The translations under genes and the position numbers were made by a program. Positions 2,918 through 64,000 of a stretch of DNA of 64,000 nucleotides are shown here, one piece after another. The notes beneath the pieces are model-generated. The model had not been told where the DNA came from. It ran no database searches and was given only the letters and a program-made list of their open reading frames with translations. This stretch comes from Hemiscyllium ocellatum (lineage: Eukaryota), in contig NC_083429.1 of the NCBI RefSeq assembly GCF_020745735.1, forward strand, positions 23,975,877 through 24,039,876, in the 5' to 3' direction. How positions within the stretch are numbered: position 1 is the stretch's first letter; each line of letters starts with the position of its first letter.

Positions 2918-3895
2918 AACCGTATTCAACAGGGATCTGTTCTGGAGCCTCTGCTCTTTTTGATTTTTATAAATGACTCGGATGAGGAAGTGGAAGGGTG
3001 GGTTAGTAAATTTGCCGTTGACACAAAGGTTGGTGGAGTTGTGGACAGTGTGGAAGGGTTGTAGGTTGCAATGAGACATCGACAGGATGCAGAGCTGGGC
3101 TAAGAAGTGTCAGATGGAGTTCAACCTGGAAAAGTGGGAAGTGATTCATTTTTAAAAGACCAAATTTGAATGCAGAATACAGGGTTAAAAAGGTGGGATT
3201 CTTGGCAGAGTGGAGGAACAGAGGGATCTTGGGGGTCCCTCAAAGTTGCCACCCAAGTTTATAGGGTTGTTAAGGCAGTGTATGGTGTGTTAGCTTTAAT
3301 TAGTGGGAGATTTAGTTTAACAGTCGCAAGGTTAAGGCATAGATATAAAGCCCTGGTTAACCACACTTGGAATATTGTGTTCAGTTCTGGTTGCCTCAAT
3401 TATAGGATGTGGAAGCTTTAGAGAGGGTGAAGAGGAGATTTACCAGGATGCTGCCTGGACTGGAGAGCACGTCTTACAAAGAAAAGTTGAGGGAGCCATG
3501 GTTTTTCTCATTGGAACGAAGAAGGATGAGAGGTGACTTGATAGAGGTATGCAAAATAATGAGAGGCATAAATAAAGTCGATAGCCAGAGACCTTTACCC
3601 AGGACAGAAAGAGCTATCATGAGGGGGCATAATTTTAAAACTTGTAGGAAGGTTTAGGGGAGACGTCAGAGGTAGGTTCTTTACACAGAGTGTGGTGGGT
3701 GAGTGGAATGCACTGCCAGCAGTGGCAACAGAATCAGATACTATAAGGACATTTAAGAGACTCTTGGATAGACACATGGATGATAGTAAAATGAAGAGTA
3801 GGTAGGTTAGTTTGATCTTAGAGTAGGATAAAAAAAGTTGGCACAACATCAAAAGTAGAATGGCCTGTACTGTGCTGTACTGTTCTATGTTCTAT
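2918..3895 (+). mobile_element. 5'-truncated CR1 LINE (RT to 3' end), decayed
   Basis: FINDS..VSKFAVDTKVGGVVDS (RT motif region), LERVKRRFTRMLPGL and FFTQSVVGEWNALP; ends in a gttctat tandem tail. Confidence 0.88.
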
Positions 3896-6211: not shown

Positions 6212-8008
6212 CCGACAAAAGGGTAACTAGGGAGAAAATAGGGCCCCTCAAAGATCAGGAAGGCTGCCTTTGTGTGGAGCCGCAGGAGATGGGACAGATA
6301 CTAAGTGAGTATTTTGCATCAGTATTTACTGATGTGGAAAAGGACACGGAAGATATAGAATCTAGGGAAATAGATGGTGACATCTTGAAAAATGTGCACA
6401 TTACAGAGGAAGAAGTGCTGGTGCTTTGAAACGCATAAATGTGGATAAATCCCCAGGACCTGATCAGGGGCACCTTAGAACTCTGGGAAGCTAGAGAAGT
6501 GATTGCTGGGCCTCTTACGGAGATATTTGTATCATCAATAGTCCCAGGCTGAAGTCCATAAGTCTGGAGGTTGGCCACATGGTGCCACTGTTTAAGAAAG
6601 GTGGTAAGGAGCAGCCAAGGAACTATAGACCAGTGAGCCTGACCTTGGTGGTGGGCAAGTTGTTGGAGGGAATCCTGAGGGACAGGATGTACATGTACTT
6701 GGAAAGGCAAGGACTGATTAGGGATAGTCAAAATGGTTTTATGCGTGAGAAATCATGTCTCACAAACTTGATTGAGGCTTTTGAAGAAGTAACAAAGAGG
6801 ATTGATGAGGGCAGAGCAGTGAATGTGATCTATGTGGACTTCAGTAAGGCATTCGACAAGGTTTCCCATGGGAGACTGATTAGCAAGGTTAGATCTCATA
6901 GAATACAGGGAGAACTAGCCATTTGGATAAAGAACTGGCTCAAAGGTAGAAGACAGAGGGTGGTGGTGGAGGGTTGTTTTTCAGACTGGAGGCCTGTGAC
7001 CAGTGGAGTGCTACAAGGATCAGTGCTGGGTCCATTACTTTTCTTCATTTATATAAATGATTTGAACGTGAGCATAAGAGGTATAGTTAATAAGTTTGCA
7101 GATGACACCAAAAATGGAGGTGTAGTGGACTGCGAAGAATGTTACCTCAGATTACAACGGGATCTTGATCAGATGGGCCAATGGGCTGAGAAGTGGCAGA
7201 TGGAGTTTAATTTAGATAAATATGAGGTGCTGCATATTAGGAAAGCAAATCTTAGCATGACTTATACACTTAATGGTAAGGTCCTAGGGAGTGTTGCTGA
7301 ACAAAGAGACCTTGGAGTGCAGGTTCATAGCTCCTTGAAAGTGGAGTTGTAGATAGATAGGATAGTGAAGGCGATATATGGTATGCTTTCCTTTATTGGT
7401 CAGAGTATTGAGTACAGGAGTTGGGAGGTCATGTTGCAGCTGTACAGGACATTGGTTAGGCCACTCTTGAAATTTTGCGTGCAATTGTGGTCTCCATCCT
7501 ATCGGAAAGATGTTGTGAAACTTGAAAGGGTTCAGAAAGGATTTACAAGGATGTTGCCAGGGTTGGAGGATTTGAGCTAGAGAGAGAGGTTGAATAGGCT
7601 AGGGCTGTTTTCCCTGGAGTGTCGGAGGCTGAGGGGTGACCTTGTTGAGGTTATAAAATCATGAGGGGCATGGATAGGATAAATAGACAAAGTCTTTTCC
7701 CTTGGGTGGAGGAGTTCAGAACTAGAAGGCATTGGTTTAGGGTGAGGGGGAAAGATATAAAACAATCCTAAGGGGCAATTTTTTTCACGCAGAGGGTGGT
7801 ACATGTACAGAATGAGCTGCCAGAGGAAGTGGTGGAGGCTGGTACAATTGCAACATTTAAAAGACATCTCGATAGGTATATGAATAAGAAGGGTTTGGAG
7901 GGAGATGGGCCGCCTGTCAGGTGGGACTAGATTCGGTTAGGATATCTGGTCGGCATGGATGAGTTGGACCGAAGGGTCTGTTTCTGTGCTGTACATCACT
8001 ATGACTCT
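6212..8008 (+). mobile_element. CR1/HER1-type LINE, 3' 1.8 kb with a relatively intact RT domain (ORF 6579..7352)
   Basis: Contains NYRPVSLT, YVDFSKAFDKV, GVLQGSVLGPLLF, YINDL and KFADDTK. Stops and frameshifts flank the ORF; ends in a ctatgactct tail. Confidence 0.95.
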
Positions 8009-24770: not shown

Positions 24771-25536
24771 ATCCAGAGTTAACATACAAGGACTTAATAG
24801 ACAAAGTTAACCAAAAGAAGAGACGTTTAGGACAGTGTTAATAAATAGAATAATCCACAACAATATACAGAGTTAATGTATATAGTAAGATAATTTACAG
24901 AGATAACACCTGATGTAGAGTTAATATGTAGTTAAATATATAAAAATGATGATTAATGTCCCACCAACCCCCAAAGTGTGATCCTCAGCCTAAACTCGGC
25001 ACCAATCATGGTCTTCTGGGGACTATGGTGACTTTACTTTTTACAGAAGTGATCTAATATATAAGGTAGTCTGATGCCTGGTTATTATCTCTTTACCATT
25101 TGTAGAATTGGGCTGAATGGAAATAGTCTTGCATTTTTGTTATGTTACAACATTTCAGGTGAACGTAATTGGCTGTGAACACTTTGGAAAATCCCAACGA
25201 TAAGAAAAGTGATATTCAAATGAAAGTTCTTCATGAAGCACAATATAAACAAAATAAAGCCTTGCATTTACAAAGCACTTTTCATAACTGCCAGAAATTT
25301 CATTACATTTTATGGTCAATGAATTAGGTTTTGAAATATATTTGAAGTTGTAATAGAAGAAATGTCATAATCCATTTGCACACATCAAACCACCATGAAC
25401 AGCAATGTAATTGAAATAACTCCATGAAGGCCGGTATCCTATCACCAAGTCACTCGTTATTTACATGTAAATAGTACATGACACTGACCCAGCTATCTCA
25501 GGGCCAGCTCTGAGTGAGCAGGACCTCAGACATTCC

Positions 25537-26897
25537 TTTTTTAAAATATCTTATTAAACAATACACAGTTTACAAAACAATTAACATTAACAGCTATACA
25601 TAGAGAAACAGCAATTTTACAAGGGAGAGGAGCAGCAAAGCCAGGCCCCAAACCTTACCATTCAACCAGTTTTCAGGGAAGTGAGGACAAACCTCAAATC
25701 CCAGTTTCAATCATTACAAAACAGTAACAATGACATTTGTACATAAAATAAACAGTCCAATTATATAAGGAAGTGCATACTATACAGACCCCCAGCAACC
25801 CAACAAGCTACCCATCCCTCCCACCTTCCAGCTACTCCTAAGGCAGCCCCCCACCCCCACCCCCACCCCATGCCCCTTCCGGCTCTCAACCCACCCCATT
25901 CCCCTTCTGGCTCAAGGTCCACCCTGACATACGTTCCGAACACCTCTAGGACAGCACATCCTGCTTCCCAACCCCCCGCAGGATGACAGCGGTCAGGATG
26001 ACCTACCCACCTTCCGGCCACCTGTAGGATAGCCCGCCTCGGTACCTGCCCAGGGTGACAGCGCTGAGGACGGCCTACCCGACTTCCGGTTACATTCCTT
26101 TTTTTTATTTTATTAAACAATTCACAGTTTACAAAACAATTAACATTAACAGCTGTATACAGAAAAACAGCAATTTTACAAGGGAGAGGAGCAAAGCCAG
26201 GCCCCAAACCTTACCATTCAATCAGTTTTCAGGGAAATGAGGACAAACCTCAAATCCCAGTTTCAATCATTACAAAACAGTAACAATGACATTTGTACAT
26301 ACAAGACAATCCAATTACATAAAAAAACAGTGCATACAATACAGACCCCCAGAAACCCAGCAAGTACCCCCAGTCCCTCCCATCCTCCGGCTAATCTAAG
26401 GCAGCCCACCCCTACGCCCCTTCTGGCTCTCGGTCCACCCTGTGTCCCTTCCAGTTCTCGGTCACATTCCTGGTTATTTTTTTTCATTTCCTGCAGTCAG
26501 GAGACTCTCTGAATCTCCTGTTTATTTATTTTTTATTTCATTAAGCAATTACAAAACACAAGTTTACAAAAAACAGTTAACATTTACAGCTGTATACAAC
26601 AGCAGTTTTACAAGGGACAGGAGCAGCAAACCCAGGCCCCAAACCCTACCATTCAACCAGTTTACAGGAAGGTGAGGACAAACGTCAAGTCCCAGTTTCA
26701 AACATGAAAAGGCATCAACGATGACATTTGTACATAAAAAGCCAACCCAGTTACATAAAAACAGTGCATATAATACAGACCCCCAGAAACACAGCAAGCA
26801 CCTCCCGTCCCTCCCACCTTCCAACCACTCTAATGCAGCCCACCCCTATGCATCTTCCGGATCTCGGTCCACCCTGTGCCCCTTCCAATTCTCGGTC
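25537..26897 (-). mobile_element. Three head-to-tail 3' ends of a poly(A) retroelement, family A (25537-26091, 26099-26463, ~26521-26897)
   Basis: Three diverged direct repeats (attaaacaa..acagtttacaaaacaattaacatt..ccaggccccaaacc), each starting with a T-rich tract on + and ending at an ACATT(C/T)CT motif. No recognisable ORF; probably a 3' UTR. Confidence 0.75.
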
Positions 26898-26909
26898 ACA
26901 TTTCTGTTT

Positions 26910-28463
26910 ACTTCTTTATTTTTTTAAGACACAAGGTGCATGAATCTTTGTTTGGTTTCCAATAAAGGAAGAAAGGAAACACCTGAGTGGCCAGTGACAA
27001 GCAGTGCCCTTCACATCAAAGGGCAATGCTGTGTGATCAAACAGTGAAGGGGAGGGCAGGGACTAAATCAAAATAGAGTTGGAGGGGGAAATAATGCACT
27101 CCACACCCTGCGGCGCCCACCTCTCCCTGAACAACTCCAGGGTGCTGGTGGACATTGCATGCTCCTTCTCCAGAGACACCCGGGCTCTAACGTAACCACG
27201 GAAGAGGGGCAGGCAGTTGGCCCTAATGACTCCACACATTTCTGCTTTTTTTCAAAAGGAGAGTCCTTGACACTGGTCCAGCTTCCTCAGAGCCAGCTCT
27301 CAGAATGACAGAATGTCTGACCCTCCGGTTTTTTTTGACACTCATGTTCTTTTTTACATTTCTGTTTATTTCTTTTTTATCTTTTTTTCTATTCTTTTTC
27401 TTATTCTTTTTTTCTTGCCCACAATACTGCCGAACTGCGGTAGTGCTTATTTATTCCCCAGCACCCATGTGTGTGTGTGCAGGTGTGAGACACAGTGAAA
27501 GACACAAGGTGCACGAATCTTTATTCAGTTTCCACCTCCAGGAAGAAAGGAAACACCCGAGTGGCCAGTGACAAGCAGTGCCCTTCACATCAAAGGGCAA
27601 TGCTGTGTGATCAAAGAGTGAAGGGGAGGGCAGGGGCTAAATCAAAATAGAATTGGACAGGGAAATAATGCACTCCACTCCCTGCATCGCCCACCTCTCC
27701 CTGAACAACTCCCCGGTTTAGGTTGAGACCGCGTGCTCCTTCTCCGGACTCCAACGTAACTGCAGAAAAGGGGCAGGCAGTCGGCCCTAACGACCCCATA
27801 CATTTCTGTTTTTTTTCAATAGGAGAGTCCTTGACACTGGTCCAGCTTCCTCAGAGCCAGCTCTCAGAATGACAGGATGTCTGACCCTCCGTTTTTTTTT
27901 GACACTCATGTTCTTTTTTCCATTTCTGTTTTTTTTAGCAGTGCCCTTCATTCCCCATTTTTTTATTAACCCCCACACTACTGCCTAACTGCGTTAGTGC
28001 TTATTTTTCCCCAGCACTCATGGTGTGTGTGTGCAGGTGTGAGACACAGTGAGAGACACAAAGTGCACGAATCTTTATTCAACTTCCACCACCAGGAAGA
28101 TGGAAAAACACCCAGGTGGCCAGTGACAACATTTCTGTTTCTTTTTTTTTCTTTTTTTTGTGAGACACAGTGAAAGACACAAGATGCATGAATCTTTACT
28201 CAAATTTCCACCACCAGGAAGAAAGGAAACACCCGAGTGGCCAGTGACAAGCAGTGCCCTTCACATCAAATGGAGTTTGTTTTTTTTTTCTTTTTAAATT
28301 AACCCCCGCACTACCGCCTAACTGCGGTAGTGCTTATTTTTTTCCCCAGCACCCATGGTGTGTGTGTGCAGGTGTGAGATACAGTGAGAGACACAAAGTG
28401 TATGAATCTTTATTCAATTTCCACCACCAGGAAGATAGGAAAACACCCAGGTGGCCAGTGACA
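26910..28463 (-). mobile_element. Stack of 5'-truncated Tx1-clade (L1 group) LINE 3' ends, family B (at least 5 copies)
   Basis: Minus strand 27233-27063 reads GVIRANCLPLFRGYVRARVSLEKEHAMSTSTLELFRERWAPQGVECIISPSNSILI*, resembling the C-terminus of fish/amphibian Tx1 ORF2. The 3' UTR is repeated at ~26925, 27415, 27965, 28160 and 28297, each preceded by poly(T). Confidence 0.8.
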
Positions 28464-28475
28464 ACATTTCTGTTT

Positions 28476-29042
28476 TTCTTTGGAATTTCAAGTAGTCAAG
28501 TTTTATTTGTATTGTACAATTCTATTCACATTATCCACAATCAACAATGGTAATAGTAGAGGATGGCTTGCCACCTTCACTGCCACATTTCTCTATCATC
28601 TCCACGACATCATAGCCTTTTACAACTTTACCAAATACGACATGCTTCCCATCCAACCAACTAGTTTTGTCAGTACATATAAAGAACTGTGACCCATTTG
28701 TATTTGGCCCAGTATTGGCCATAGACAGGAGACCACGTTCAGTGTGCTTTAATTGGAAATTCTCATCAGCAAACTTCTGTCCATAAATGGACTTCCCACC
28801 AGTGCCATTGCGGTTTGTGAAGTCACCTCCCTGGCACATGAATTTAGGAATGATTCTGTGGAATGTTGAATTCTTATAACCAAACCCCTTCTCATAAGTG
28901 CACAGTGCACGGAAATTTTCTGCAGTTTTTGGGACCACATCAGCTCTGAGCTCCATCTCGATGCGCCCCACGTTCCTGCCGTTGATGCGATGTCCATGAA
29001 CATGCGCGGGTTCCTGTTCGCCATGACGCCTGCACAAGAACA
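28476..29042 (-). pseudogene. PPIA: Processed pseudogene of cytosolic cyclophilin A (peptidyl-prolyl isomerase)
   Basis: Intronless. ATG at 29024, [12 protein letters not shown], then a 1-nt frameshift at ~28988, then [71 protein letters not shown] at 28507-28502, A-rich tail remnant at 28481-28473, flanked by a direct repeat acaacatttctgttt (28461-28475 and 29040-29054). Confidence 0.92.
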
Positions 29043-29905
29043 ACATTTCTGTTTCTATCTGTCAACCAGGACTCCCTGATTGGCCCAGCTTAACAGTTCC
29101 AATCAGGGAACTAATATTCTATGATATCCACCTGGCTGATCTCATTCCAACCACAACAGCGATAATGACCAGATGATCTGTTTTTGTGACTTTGATTGCA
29201 GGATTAATATAGGCCAGAACATCAGGCATAGATTCCTTGCTCTCCTCAAGACTGCCATGGGATATTTGGCATCCACACAAACAGGGGCTGTGTTTTAACA
29301 TCTTATCACAAAGACAGCTTCTCTGCACTACATCAAACTGTTAACATTTGTCCTTCACTCTTAGAATGGGATTTAAATCCAAAACCCATTAATTCAGAGG
29401 TGTGAGTGTTACCAACGGAACCACAACTGAAAGGTCAGTGCAAATTGTTTCTTCAGAGTGTTGGCAACCAGGCAGTTAATGGTAGAACCATACAATATTT
29501 AAACTGATTTCCCTTATTGTAATTATTATGCCATTGGTTTTAAAATATTCAACCTTACCCTCCTCTGATTTTAGGGATAAAATCTTCACCCAAAACCATT
29601 AAAACTGACATGAGGGACCCTTACCCATGTATGACTTCACGTGCCATTTTATCCTTTCACATTTTTTGTATTTTTTTTTACAGCTATTGCACCTATAGTG
29701 CACTTTCCAAGCACGAAAAGAGTGTGTGAGGACTTTAGGTTTTGTGGTGAGGTTTTAACTTTATGATTCTGTATGTATAAACCACCAATCCTGTATAAAG
29801 ATACTGATTTATTGATAGCAAATGGATCAGAAAAATATATAACCCAGCTACTTTAGTGCCTCAGACCTGATCATTGGGGGTCAGTCCTCCAGCACAGCAG
29901 GCGAG

Positions 29906-60282: not shown

Positions 60283-61669
60283 AAAATTCCTTGATTTCTT
60301 TTTGGCAACAACACTCCAGCAATTTAGTTATAATAAAGTACAGGGTAAATCCTTTAAAATAGATCCAGGATTTAAGGTCAAGAGATATTTGCTATATTAA
60401 AAAATAGGATGGAGAATAAATTTACGTCTTTGTATTGTTGATGGGTAAATTCCATTCAACCTGACCACCTTCAGTCCCCATGTTGTTGTGAAACTGGGCA
60501 GTGACTATTCATGAAGGCATGTCACTATGAAATACCATTGTTTAACTTTGCCATTAATCTGTTCAAAATAAATGTTACAATTAGTAGATAAAAGCATTCC
60601 TGGTGAGCATTTTGAGAGTCTGTATGTTGATATTCATAGGGCCCAATTTCGGGCCATTGGTCTTTAAGATTGGAACTTTAAAGGTATATGTCCAAGCCCA
60701 TTGAAACAGCTGTCTGTGGCATTTAATACCTAGTGACCACTTGAGTTTAGACAGTGATTGCAGGTAGATTATTTTATTATGGAGTAATTATAGTTGAACC
60801 CAATCCTGTTTATGCTGAGCATCTGGGCTCGGTCATTGGACAGTGATCTGTTCAAAATCTTTTTTTAAAGATGATCACTGCACCTTTGACACCTCTCCTT
60901 GCACTGCATTGGCTTGCCATCCTAGATTCGGTGCTCTGGTATGGAGTACCACATGAGCTGCCAGTTTTTTGAACTCCAATTTGAGAATAAATGGCATCAG
61001 TTGCAGCAATGCTCAGCTACATATTGTGGTTAAATATGTAAATGCTGAGTACGCCGTTTACTGAGCATCTAATCTAGTCTATAACTGACCTTGCTTAGAT
61101 GAACAGCATGCTCTCTAAATGTTAGGTGTTCAACGTAGTTAGATACAAATATAGTTTTAAACACTTCAAGGCCAGTTATAGAATAGATTAGGTACAGAGT
61201 GATATTCCAAGTTTAGTATTTGTTATTCTTGCAGAAGAGCAGAGAAGTTCTCCCTCAACTTCTGGGCGAAACCTACCCTTTAACTTGCACCAATAAAAGG
61301 TTTATCTAGCCACTATCTAACCACTGTTTGTGGAAACTTGCTGAATGCAAATTGGCTGTGACATTTCTTGCGTTGCAAAATGATTACACTTCCAAAATGT
61401 TGGACGTAAAAGTTTTTAAGAAACCAGAGATCAGGAATGTGCTACCTAAATGTAAGTCCATTCATTTTGTGGAGTGTGTATCTGGTTAAAGGTCCGAATT
61501 ATATCTGGCATAAGTGAAATATAAGAAGGCTTCCTTGTGCCAGGAGTTTCATTGCATCTCATTCCAGTACCTGATAGGAATATGATTCCAAATTCAGACG
61601 ACAGTTACATTCTAACTGTAACATTAGTGTAAAATGGAACAGCATCATCGATTCCTGGTGTGAATCATT

Positions 61670-64000
61670 CCTTAATCTTTTCCCTTCCACCTGCCTCCCA
61701 CTCTCTCTCTCTTCTTTGTCTCCCTTTCTTTTTCCCCTCTCTTTTTCTTGCTCTCACCGTCTTTTCTCTCTCTCCCTTCTCGTTCTCTCTCCCCCTTTTG
61801 TTCTCTCTCCCCATCTCGCTCTTTCTTCCGCTTTTCACTCTCCCCTTTTGCTCTCTCTTTCAGTGCTTTCGCTCATTCCCTCCCTCTCTTCACTCTCTCC
61901 CTCTCTTTGTTCACTCCCCCTTTCTTGCTCTCTCCCTCTTTTCGCTGTCTCTCACTTTTCATGCCCTCTCTTTTTACGCTTTTTCTCCCACTCTTTTTGC
62001 ACTCTCTCTCTCTCTTTTCGCTCCCTCTCCCTCTTTTCGCCCTGTCCCTCTCTCCCTTCCCCTTTTCACTCTCTCCCTTCCTCTTTTCATCTCCCTCCCT
62101 CTTTTTGCACTCTCTCCCTCTTGTCACTCTCTGTCTTCTCTCTCTCTTCTCCTTTTTGCTCTCTGTCTTTTCACTGTCCGTCTTTTCGCTCTCCCTCCAT
62201 CATTTTGATCTCTCTCCCACTTTTCTCTTTCCCACTCCGTCTTTTTCTCTCCAGCTTTTTGCTCTCTCTCTCTTTCTGTCTCTCCTTTTTTTCTCTCTCC
62301 AGTTTTTCCCCTCCCACCTTTCTCTCTCTCTCCCTCTTTTCTCGCTCTCTCCTCCCTTTTGCTCGTCTCCCTTTTGCTTGTCTCTCTCGTTGCTCTTGCT
62401 CGATCCACTCTTCACTCTCGCCCTTGCTCTTCTCGCTTACTCTTTTTCCCTCTTGCTCTTCTCTCTCTCTTTCTCTCTCACTCTCACTTTGTGTTCACGC
62501 GTGCTCTCTTTTCTCCCTCATGCACTCTCTTGCTCTCGCCTCCCTCTTGCCATCTTTTCGCACTGTCTCGCTCTTCTCTTGCTCACTCTTCTCTCTCTCT
62601 CGCACTCTGTTCTCTCTCTCTCTCACTCTCTTTTCTCTCTCACTCACTTTTTCTCATTCTTTCTTCTCTCTCTGTTGCTCTCTCTCTGCCCCCACTTTTC
62701 TCTCTCTTGCTCTTCCCCCTCTCTTTTCTCTCCCTCACTCTTATTCTTCTTGTGCTCTCTTTTCTCTCGTGCTTTTTTCTTGCGCTTTTTCTCCCGCTCT
62801 CTTTTTTCGCGCGCTGTCTTTTTTCGCGTGCTTTTTTTTCGCGCGCTCTCTTTTCTCTCACATGCTCTCACTCTTCTCTCGTGCTCTTCTCCCTCCCTTT
62901 TATCTCGTGCTCGCTTTTGTTCTCCTCTTTTTTTTCTCTAGCTCTCTTTTCTCTTTTGTCTCGCTCTTGCAGTCTTTTTTCTCACTCTCACTCATCCTTC
63001 TCCCTTTTGCTCTTTTTCTGTCTCACTCCCTCATGCTTGCTCTCTTTTCTCTCGTCTCTTTTCTATCTTGTCTGTTTTCTCTCTCCTCTCTTTTTTATCT
63101 TCTCTCACTCTTGCTGTCTTCTCTTGCACTCGCTCTTGTCGCGCTTTCACTCATCTCTCGTGCTCGCTCTCGCTTTCTCTCGCTCTCGCTCTGTCACTCT
63201 CTCTCCCACACACTTTTTTCTCTCTATCTTGTCCTCTCTCTCTCTTGCTCACCCGTGCTCCCTTTTCTCGAATGCGCTTTTTTTTCGCTCTTACGTGCTT
63301 TTTTTTGTCTCACCATGGTTTTTTTCTCTCTTGTCTCTCGCTCTCTTTTCTGTCTGTCTCTCCCTCGCTCTCTCCTCCCTCGCTCTCTCCTCCCTCGCTC
63401 TCTCCTCCCTCGCTCTCTCCTCCCTCGCTCTCTCCTCCCTCGCTCTCTCCTCCCTCGCTCTCTCCTCCCTCGCTCTCTCCTCCCTCGCTCTCTTTTCTCT
63501 TCTTGCTCGCTGTCACACTCTCTGACTCCTCTCTGTCTGTCTCTTGCTCTGTTTTACTCTCTTGCGTGCTCTATTTCGCTCTTCTCTGTCGCGCTCTTTT
63601 TCCCTCTTGCGCTCTTCTTTTGCTCTTGCTCTCTCTCTACTCTCTGGCTTTCTCTCTCGCGCCCTTTTCTCTCTCGCGCCCTCACTCTCCTCTCTCGCCT
63701 TCTCCCTCTCTCGCTCTCTTTTCCCACTCTCGCGCTCTCTTCTCGCGCGCTCTTCTTTGCTCTCGCCTTCGCTCTTGCTCTCGCTCGTCTGTCTCGCTGT
63801 TCACTTGCATTCTTTTCTCTCATGCGCTCTTTTTCATGTCTCTCATGCTCTCTTTTCTCTCTTTCACACTTGGCCTTTACTCTCTCGCTTGATCTTTTTT
63901 CTCGCGCTCGCTGTTTTTTGTCTTTCTCTCATCGCTCGGTCTTTCCTCTCGCTCGCCTTCGCTGTTTTCTCTCTCGCTGTTTTCTCTCTCTTCTCTCGCT
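61670..64000. repeat. Polypyrimidine (CT-rich) low-complexity tract >2.3 kb, running off the window
   Basis: Almost exclusively C/T on the + strand, with recurring ctctct, ttttcgct and tcact motifs. Confidence 0.97.
63361..63493. repeat. Perfect 15-bp minisatellite (tccctcgctctctcc), 8 full units plus a partial unit
   Basis: Directly visible; gives the ESEGG and SSLAL repeat pseudo-ORFs. Confidence 0.97.

Follow-up and report, generated by a model that had tools for sequence, protein, structure and literature searches.

How could copies of quite unlike RNAs come to be stacked at one and the same nucleotide position, each parted from the next by a copy of one short motif? This question is posed by positions 25530–29053 of a 64,000-nucleotide stretch of Hemiscyllium ocellatum DNA (assembly GCF_020745735.1, contig NC_083429.1, forward-strand positions 23,975,877 to 24,039,876; hereafter the window), where a first-pass annotation had described 11 copies of such a motif and had proposed that every insertion regenerates its own target. 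We read the region 25200–29400 directly, searched the whole 64-kb window on both strands for the pattern CATTYCTGTT with at most one mismatch, and aligned to the region contigs from four public runs, of which two represent samples of the window's species and two represent related species. The answer that we favor, and consider probable, is that a ~236-bp repeat resembling a long terminal repeat (LTR), with its sense on the minus strand, offers target-primed reverse transcription (TPRT) a preferred landing site just downstream of the repeat's CCAAT and TATA-position elements, and that use of this site built the stack. We count at least five, and probably eight, independent insertions at the exact position.

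Inserts and junctions in an LTR-like host element

The pattern search returned 11 plus-strand matches in the array, beginning at 25531, 26093, 26465, 26899, 27237, 27357, 27801, 27921, 28130, 28465, and 29044. Seven of these 11 are exact, and no exact match lies elsewhere in the window on either strand, so that the earlier count was borne out; for the window as a whole, 32 matches with at most one mismatch were obtained versus 16.2 ± 4.3 in shuffled sequences. The first two copies, M1 (25530–25540, in the original left context; family consensus at this place GACACTCCTG) and M2 (26092–26102), both read ACATTCCTTTT, and the third, M3 (26464–26475), reads ACATTCCTGGTT. Exact matches are M4 (ACATTTCTGTT, 26898–26908), M6 (27356–27366), M9 (28129–28139), and M10 (28464–28474), whereas M8 (27920–27930) deviates as cCATTTCTGTT. 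M5 (27236–27246) and M7 (27800–27810) are treated below as passengers inside two composite units. As had been stated before, and as is directly visible in the sequence, a T tract follows every copy but the last (10 of 11); this last copy, M11 (29043–29053), stands in the original right context and continues into TCTATCTGTCAACC, the host element's own sequence. Viewed on the minus strand, each interval is an insert with poly(A) at its end and AACAGAAATGT after it. At every junction, the left border of the duplication falls on the A of ACATT, the nick side is a constant CTGTT(T), the target-site duplication measures 11–12 bp at each junction, and tandem inserts of the same direction sandwich one duplication copy. 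An assembly artefact at the junctions was ruled out by contigs from an independent sample over two of them: a contig of a second sample and study spans the A3–motif–B junction (26642–26995), and a second-sample contig spans the junction from the cyclophilin A (PPIA) retrocopy through the motif to the right LTR part (29005–29149), each with 0 differences.

The element interrupted by the stack consists of a left part (25412–25529, minus strand), which represents the R/U5 side in the LTR sense and includes a decayed AATAAA region, and a right part (29054–29158, minus strand), which represents the U3 side. Per run, 150–200 contigs start to match at 25411/25412, and the sequence before this point is unrelated (agreement 0.36), which identifies the left part as the end of a dispersed repeat beginning with TG. 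Contig depth over the left part exceeds that of the single-copy flank by a factor of tens to hundreds, and for the right part it amounts to 60,544 in the bin 29052–29185 as against 221 in the bin that follows; the position of the right end (...CA, 29158) comes from sequence reading only. The TG..CA element that the first-pass annotation had obtained by rejoining the two parts is thus indeed a repeated one, but its left end falls at 25411/25412 and not at 25406, which gives ~236 bp instead of ~245 bp. Since the family consensus from other copies runs through GACACTCCTG, the motif is part of the host element. On the minus strand, two CCAAT boxes are followed ~20 nt on by GATAGAAA at the TATA position, which adjoins the motif, and then by an AATAAC region and the end of the element; the sister-family consensus from other copies has AATAAA at the place of AATAAC. 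The CCAAT boxes form an inverted pair at 29073–29108 (TCCCTGATTGG ... CCAATCAGGGA), with arms of 11 bp and a spacer of 14 nt, and closely precede the landing site in the LTR sense. In this layout, the landing site would be flanked by the TATA-position element on one side and by the expected transcription start on the other. No full-length LTR element was seen, and the flanks GTAAT and GCGAT, agreeing at 3 of 5 positions, are not convincing as the LTR's own duplication. The host element is likely, though not proven, to be a short solo LTR, in the same sense as all inserts.

All inserts lie on the minus strand, as had been recognized before, and comprise three tails of a family A, five pieces of a family B, and one copy of a cellular mRNA that is PPIA-like. 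Among the A tails, A1 (25541–26091; 551 bp, with poly(A)) is the longest and is 84% identical to A2 (26103–26463) and 81% to A3 (~26524–26897), while A3 is 82% identical to A2. The 5' end of A2, GACCGAGAAC, and that of A3, GACCGAGAAT, are identical. Between M3 and A3 lies a passenger (26476–26523, minus strand) composed of poly(A), a 27-nt fragment of a third LTR variant (26485–26523), and the site variant AATCTCCTGTTT, which, in our reading, the A3 RNA carried along at its 3' end. The junction of LTR, M1, and A1 is also present in a related species, where a 164-bp contig (X5) spans 25417–25580 with eight differences. Among the contigs listed for the two related species, those covering the locus itself comprised this junction and the left flank, both in the species of X5. 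For 10 other A copies in contigs of the window's species, the 3'-flank consensus ends in CTATTCCTGTT followed by a T run, this end also being given as ATTCCTGTT plus T run (10 contigs). As a side observation, the 5' part of A1 (25836–26091, minus strand) is made up of degenerate tandem units (CCGGAAGGTGGG...) with a period of ~28, as detected by Tandem Repeats Finder (TRF), and this part is far rarer in contigs than the last 150 nt of A.

The five pieces of family B occupy 26909–27235, 27367–27799, 27931–28128, 28140–28279, and 28280–28463, and end at three different points: a proximal one (~20 nt after AATAAA), a distal one (after AATAAATAAG and a hairpin), and an intermediate one. Two of the pieces belong to composite units on the minus strand. 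Unit 1 (26909–27355) combines the B piece 26909–27235, which has the proximal poly(A) end, with M5 and a 110-bp piece (27247–27355) that consists of poly(A), the variant GACACTCATGTTC, poly(A) again, and a sister-LTR fragment ending in GACCCTCCGG. Unit 2 (27367–27919) combines the B piece 27367–27799, with the distal end and a long, impure poly(A), with M7 and a second 110-bp piece (27811–27919) of the same internal poly(A) structure; as other B copies extend 5' past 27797, the B part of unit 2 is 5'-truncated. On the minus strand, homology between the two units starts exactly at the motif, runs via the 110-bp piece and the internal motif into the 5'-truncated B, and stops exactly at the B proximal poly(A) site, where unit 1 passes into a poly(A) of its own and then into the next motif, whereas unit 2 runs on into the distal 3' end. 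As these borders coincide with the target site and a poly(A) site, the units can be explained as two retrocopies of one composite RNA, in which case each ~570-bp unit would be a single insert and the internal motifs at 27236 and 27800 would be passengers. For the 'poly(A)-only inserts' of the first-pass annotation, the better interpretation is likewise that they are passenger variants of the motif within a composite insert; its looser motif variants at ~26511, 27319/27883, and 27337/27901 are real, as alignment to the host LTR confirms.

The remaining B inserts are also on the minus strand. In S8 (27931–28128), the 5' end reads TGTCACTGG and the poly(A) site is the distal one, after which there is a 21-nt B fragment with a second poly(A). 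S9 (28140–28463) contains the piece S9b (28280–28463), which shares both TGTCACTGG and the distal end with S8 but differs from it in the sequence after the poly(A); here the poly(A) of S9b is joined directly, without a motif, to the piece S9a (28140–28279). Such joining of B pieces poly(A)-to-5'-end would be as in a template-switch chimera. The distal 3' end of B also features a stem-loop just before the poly(A), at 28300–28335 (minus strand) as well as at 27411–27470 and 27958–28015. In S9b it has a perfect 10-bp stem (GCACUACCGC-AGUUAG-GCGGUAGUGC; -19.8 kcal/mol, z = -4.4) and it is decayed in the other copies. Since B copies with the proximal site and the PPIA insert are without it, this stem-loop is dispensable for insertion.

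Next to the U3 side lies the intron-less PPIA-like retrocopy (28475–29042, minus strand; protein matches to PF00160), the best shark matches of which, in Chiloscyllium and Hemiscyllium, reach 91%. It has a 5' untranslated region (UTR), coding sequence, a 3' UTR with AATAAA, and a very short A tail, and its reading frame is open except for a 1-bp deletion near the N-terminus. The sequence AAACAGAAATGT stands on both sides of it and, as a PPIA mRNA is unable to contain the motif, this pair is a target-site duplication. The proposal that each insertion regenerates the site is therefore upheld, but the inserts are not all independent. Contigs of the related species match the retrocopy only over 28481–28658 or up to 29039 and then continue into unlike sequence, which indicates that they derive from other PPIA loci. 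We considered whether these contigs represent the parent gene only, and dropped this reading when an X5 contig (28481–28769) was found to cross the putative exon border at 28658. Over 28496–28926, word depth in the window's species is several times single-copy and contigs break at 28658, so that there seem to be several near-identical PPIA-like copies, namely the parent and further retrocopies. An exact-protein look-up with PPIA gave no match. The longest frame comprises 171 codons (28531–29046, minus strand), starts at an ATG inside the target motif (AACAGAAATGT), and passes the frameshifted N-terminus into the intact cyclophilin frame; as this ATG lies in the motif, the landing site supplies the start codon.

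With these features in place, the eight primary events would probably be A1, A2, A3 with its carried tail, unit 1, unit 2, S8, S9, and PPIA.

That the position is used beyond this single LTR copy is indicated by the passenger fragments. About 70 nt of the 110-bp pieces match a different, abundant LTR subfamily, and 54–95 contigs per run extend leftwards from 27258/27822 as CCATCACCAAGTCACCCTTTATTTACACGT, the counterpart of host positions 25439–25468. When aligned to the host LTR, this sister-LTR fragment ends at GACCCTCCGG, that is, at the motif column, and is followed by a T tract; the variant GACACTCATGTTC, which is close to the family consensus given above, and the variant AATCTCCTGTTT with the 27 nt of the third LTR variant are broken at the motif column as well and are again followed by a T tract. 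Altogether, four versions of the site are each interrupted at one column and joined to poly(A). Given that the breaks in the sister fragments fall at the homologous position and that poly(A) adjoins them, other LTR copies were evidently hit at the same place. A related-species contig with a B 5' end, TCCCCTGGTTCTAT, a T run, and a B 3' end shows the same kind of succession.

Repeated insertion weighed against its rivals

The resemblance among the B blocks raises the issue of whether some layers multiplied at the DNA level. According to this alternative, which we regard as unlikely, only three or four primary insertions took place (A, B, PPIA, and the sister-LTR piece), and unequal crossing-over or replication slippage between motif or B copies generated the rest. 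It would readily account for the alignment of 26926–27574 with 27499–28129 over 652 bp, for the 91.6% identity between 27958–28146 and 28291–28481, for the identical 5' ends within the pairs A2/A3 and S8/S9b and between the B copies of the two units, and for the like internal poly(A) structure of both 110-bp pieces. The 3' ends are more difficult to reconcile with it. Crossover at the motif predicts identical ends, yet unit 1 ends at the proximal poly(A) while unit 2 reaches the distal end, A3 has a 47-bp carried tail and A2 has none, and S8 and S9b differ in sequence after the poly(A). Eleven base pairs are, moreover, very short for homologous exchange, and four to five different RNAs at one nucleotide would still be required; the floor of five events holds even if all shared 5' ends go back to DNA duplication. 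A related scheme, in which the motif is the elements' own 3' end and the array a simple satellite of element plus motif, is hardly credible and largely refuted. It would require the A and B consensus to end in poly(A) plus ACAGAAATGT irrespective of flank, and although composite inserts do contain the motifs at 27236 and 27800 as well as the variants, the motif also flanks the PPIA mRNA copy on both sides, and the outermost motif copies belong one to each half of a single repeated LTR, the consensus of which holds the motif. The first-pass annotation had itself named membership of the motif in the elements' own consensus as what would overturn its reading, and the PPIA flanks and the LTR consensus largely dispose of this concern. 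Precisely where LTR, motif, and A meet, contig depth falls to 1,385, compared with 5,000–60,000 on either side, so that this junction is not part of a fixed repeat unit. Finally, the borders of the repeated blocks fall at motif and poly(A) sites and the units are unlike in content, which is not how a tandem satellite is organized.

A further possibility dispenses with any sequence-specific enzyme: L1-type machinery could have re-used the A/T-rich tail of the first insert, comparable to Alu insertion into old poly(A), the motif being within the duplication length by chance. This we consider quite improbable. The T tract after every occupied motif would make a good L1-type nick site, and processed pseudogenes such as the PPIA copy are a classical L1-type product (PMC3747384). 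At the locus, however, the nick lies after CTGTT(T) and before CTAT and not at the TTTT/A of L1, and no tail sequence is found in the duplications. L1 target-site duplications vary in length, whereas here neither border of the duplication shifts from one junction to the next. Tail-free sister-LTR variants were hit at the homologous column, and there is no other such cluster in the T-tract-rich 64-kb window.

Several observations nevertheless weigh against repeated insertion at a preferred LTR site, or against parts of this reading. The shared 5' ends of A2/A3, S8/S9b, and unit 1/unit 2 are, as outlined above, also compatible with DNA-level duplication. In the window, no LINE (long interspersed nuclear element) coding sequence linked to A or B was seen, and the translated tails are broken; 'Tx1-like', as the first-pass annotation termed family B, is accordingly a provisional label. 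Word depth of B exceeds that of the host LTR many-fold; since B is far more abundant, the host LTR family is not its only target and at most one of several. Among the longest A-bearing contigs listed, the 3' flank did not align to the left part of the host LTR at ≥85%, which implies that many A copies adjoin something else, be it sister LTRs, other stacked inserts, or unrelated DNA. Since the site variants show differences at 3–5 of 11 positions, the 11-mer alone is not the recognition element; a candidate recognition feature is the unchanged U3-side context, which is kept only by the promoter-adjacent copy. For the read-through step discussed below, it is somewhat awkward that the carried LTR piece ends ~10 nt before the LTR's AATAAA.

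A possible mechanism and its published counterparts

In the reading that we favor, a LINE endonuclease would nick the plus strand after ...ACATTTCTGTT(T), and the T-rich 3' end would prime on the poly(A) of whichever RNA the reverse transcriptase holds. A second nick 11–12 bp off would duplicate ACATTTCTGTT, and one complete site with the original U3-side context would persist after each insertion and could be hit again. Template choice would be relaxed and poly(A)-dependent, any poly(A) RNA being accepted: the templates would have been two abundant non-coding tails, with B in three end versions (two after AATAAA-type signals), a template-switch chimera, and a host mRNA. Read-through transcripts of elements residing in the same site of sister LTRs would have brought along the site variants, the LTR fragments, and the two extra motifs as passengers. 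A coarse age pattern runs from left to right. The A copies are 81–84% alike, and the junction of the LTR with M1 and A1, present in a related species, goes along with A as the most diverged copies; the B blocks are ~91–94% alike outside CpG-rich parts, and the PPIA frame next to U3 is nearly intact. Growth at the promoter end would produce such a pattern, which is nevertheless too coarse to be proof of polarity.

One may tentatively go further and propose that recognition takes place at the U3/TATA side, that the promoter-adjacent copy of the duplication is alone in remaining a target, that the stack grows at one end with the newest insert next to the promoter, and that the inserts are transcribed from the LTR promoter, with occupied LTRs as launch pads and the stack as a self-renewing, ordered record of the RNAs that one LINE has processed. 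The 5'-truncated inserts would then lie ~10 bp behind the TATA-position element, from where A, B, and composite RNAs, and occasionally host mRNAs, would be launched. We hold this extended scheme to be possible, yet doubtful as a whole. Promoter-bound factors, and not sequence alone, possibly guide the targeting.

The first-pass annotation had considered a Tx1 family that targets an LTR and shares its site with a second family as not described, a view that has to be abandoned in light of the work by Kojima (2015; PMC4494074). There, Tx1-8_Crp and Tx1-4_AMi are reported to insert preferentially into LTR retrotransposons, crocodilian Tx1-Mar LINEs have non-autonomous SINEU partners that share their Mariner-N4_AMi target, and tandem SINEU-3 insertions sandwich one duplication, which was explained by sequential insertion (PMC4494074). 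The same study applied the criterion that >20% of genomic copies be flanked by the same target, and it proposed that such elements are transcribed from the flanking target (PMC4494074). The shark locus works like this system: both have a defined position inside another transposon, a duplication of fixed length, tandem sandwiching, and partners that share the target, and Tx1-Mar/SINEU elements exhibit 5' truncation and template-switch 5' additions as seen here. The two differ in that the machinery is known here from inserts alone, in the shark host (bamboo/epaulette shark group, going by the PPIA matches), in the depth of the stack, which has at least eight layers and includes a host mRNA retrocopy, in the nested passenger fragments of sister targets, and in the location of the site at the TATA position of an LTR promoter. 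Three features, namely a host mRNA at the site, nested sister-target fragments, and the promoter-proximal position, go beyond the published pattern. A literature search on Tx1 or retrocopies in these shark genera yielded nothing relevant.

Other systems share single aspects. In Xenopus, the Tx1L endonuclease cuts one sequence inside the piggyBac-type DNA repeat Tx1D, giving composite elements, as would be the case here; its target, however, is a DNA transposon and not an LTR, and multi-RNA stacks do not form part of what PMC4494074 relates about Tx1L. L1 pseudogenes and Alu or L1 inserts in old poly(A) have in common with our locus the TPRT mode, poly(A)-dependent use of foreign RNAs, 5' truncation, 3' transduction, and chimeras, but L1 has a loose TTTT/A site and variable duplications as opposed to one nucleotide position and one duplication length. 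R2 and R1 in ribosomal DNA and TRE5-A at tRNA genes likewise exploit a repeated safe-harbor target and depend on target transcription; they rely on another endonuclease type or targeting principle, and no rRNA or tRNA gene is involved in the shark locus.

At present, the locus mainly extends the published Kojima 2015 pattern to cartilaginous fish. Should the site preference be confirmed genome-wide, it would represent a deep natural example of LINE machinery with a safe-harbor target in an LTR promoter, in which the layers per locus reveal the order of events and the template range of the enzyme (own tails, composite read-through RNAs, and host mRNAs). It would further mean that a predictable site can receive host retrogenes, and would explain the very high copy numbers of promoter-less, 5'-truncated tails. 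A site-specific enzyme that takes any poly(A) RNA would also be a practical model for targeted RNA-templated insertion.

Other features of the window

Elsewhere in the window, copies of the LTR, A, or B were absent at E ≤ 1e-5, and the window contains no second stack. A CT/CTCTC-rich simple repeat fills 61600–64000 and gives rise to several long spurious open reading frames of 182–397 aa, none of which matches Pfam. The reverse transcriptase at 6579–7352, the only one in the window, is CR1-like and belongs to a CR1-type LINE fragment at 6579–7580 on the plus strand (Pfam RVT_1, E = 1e-26), which bears no relation to families A and B; another CR1-like tail peptide is encoded at 3409–3657.

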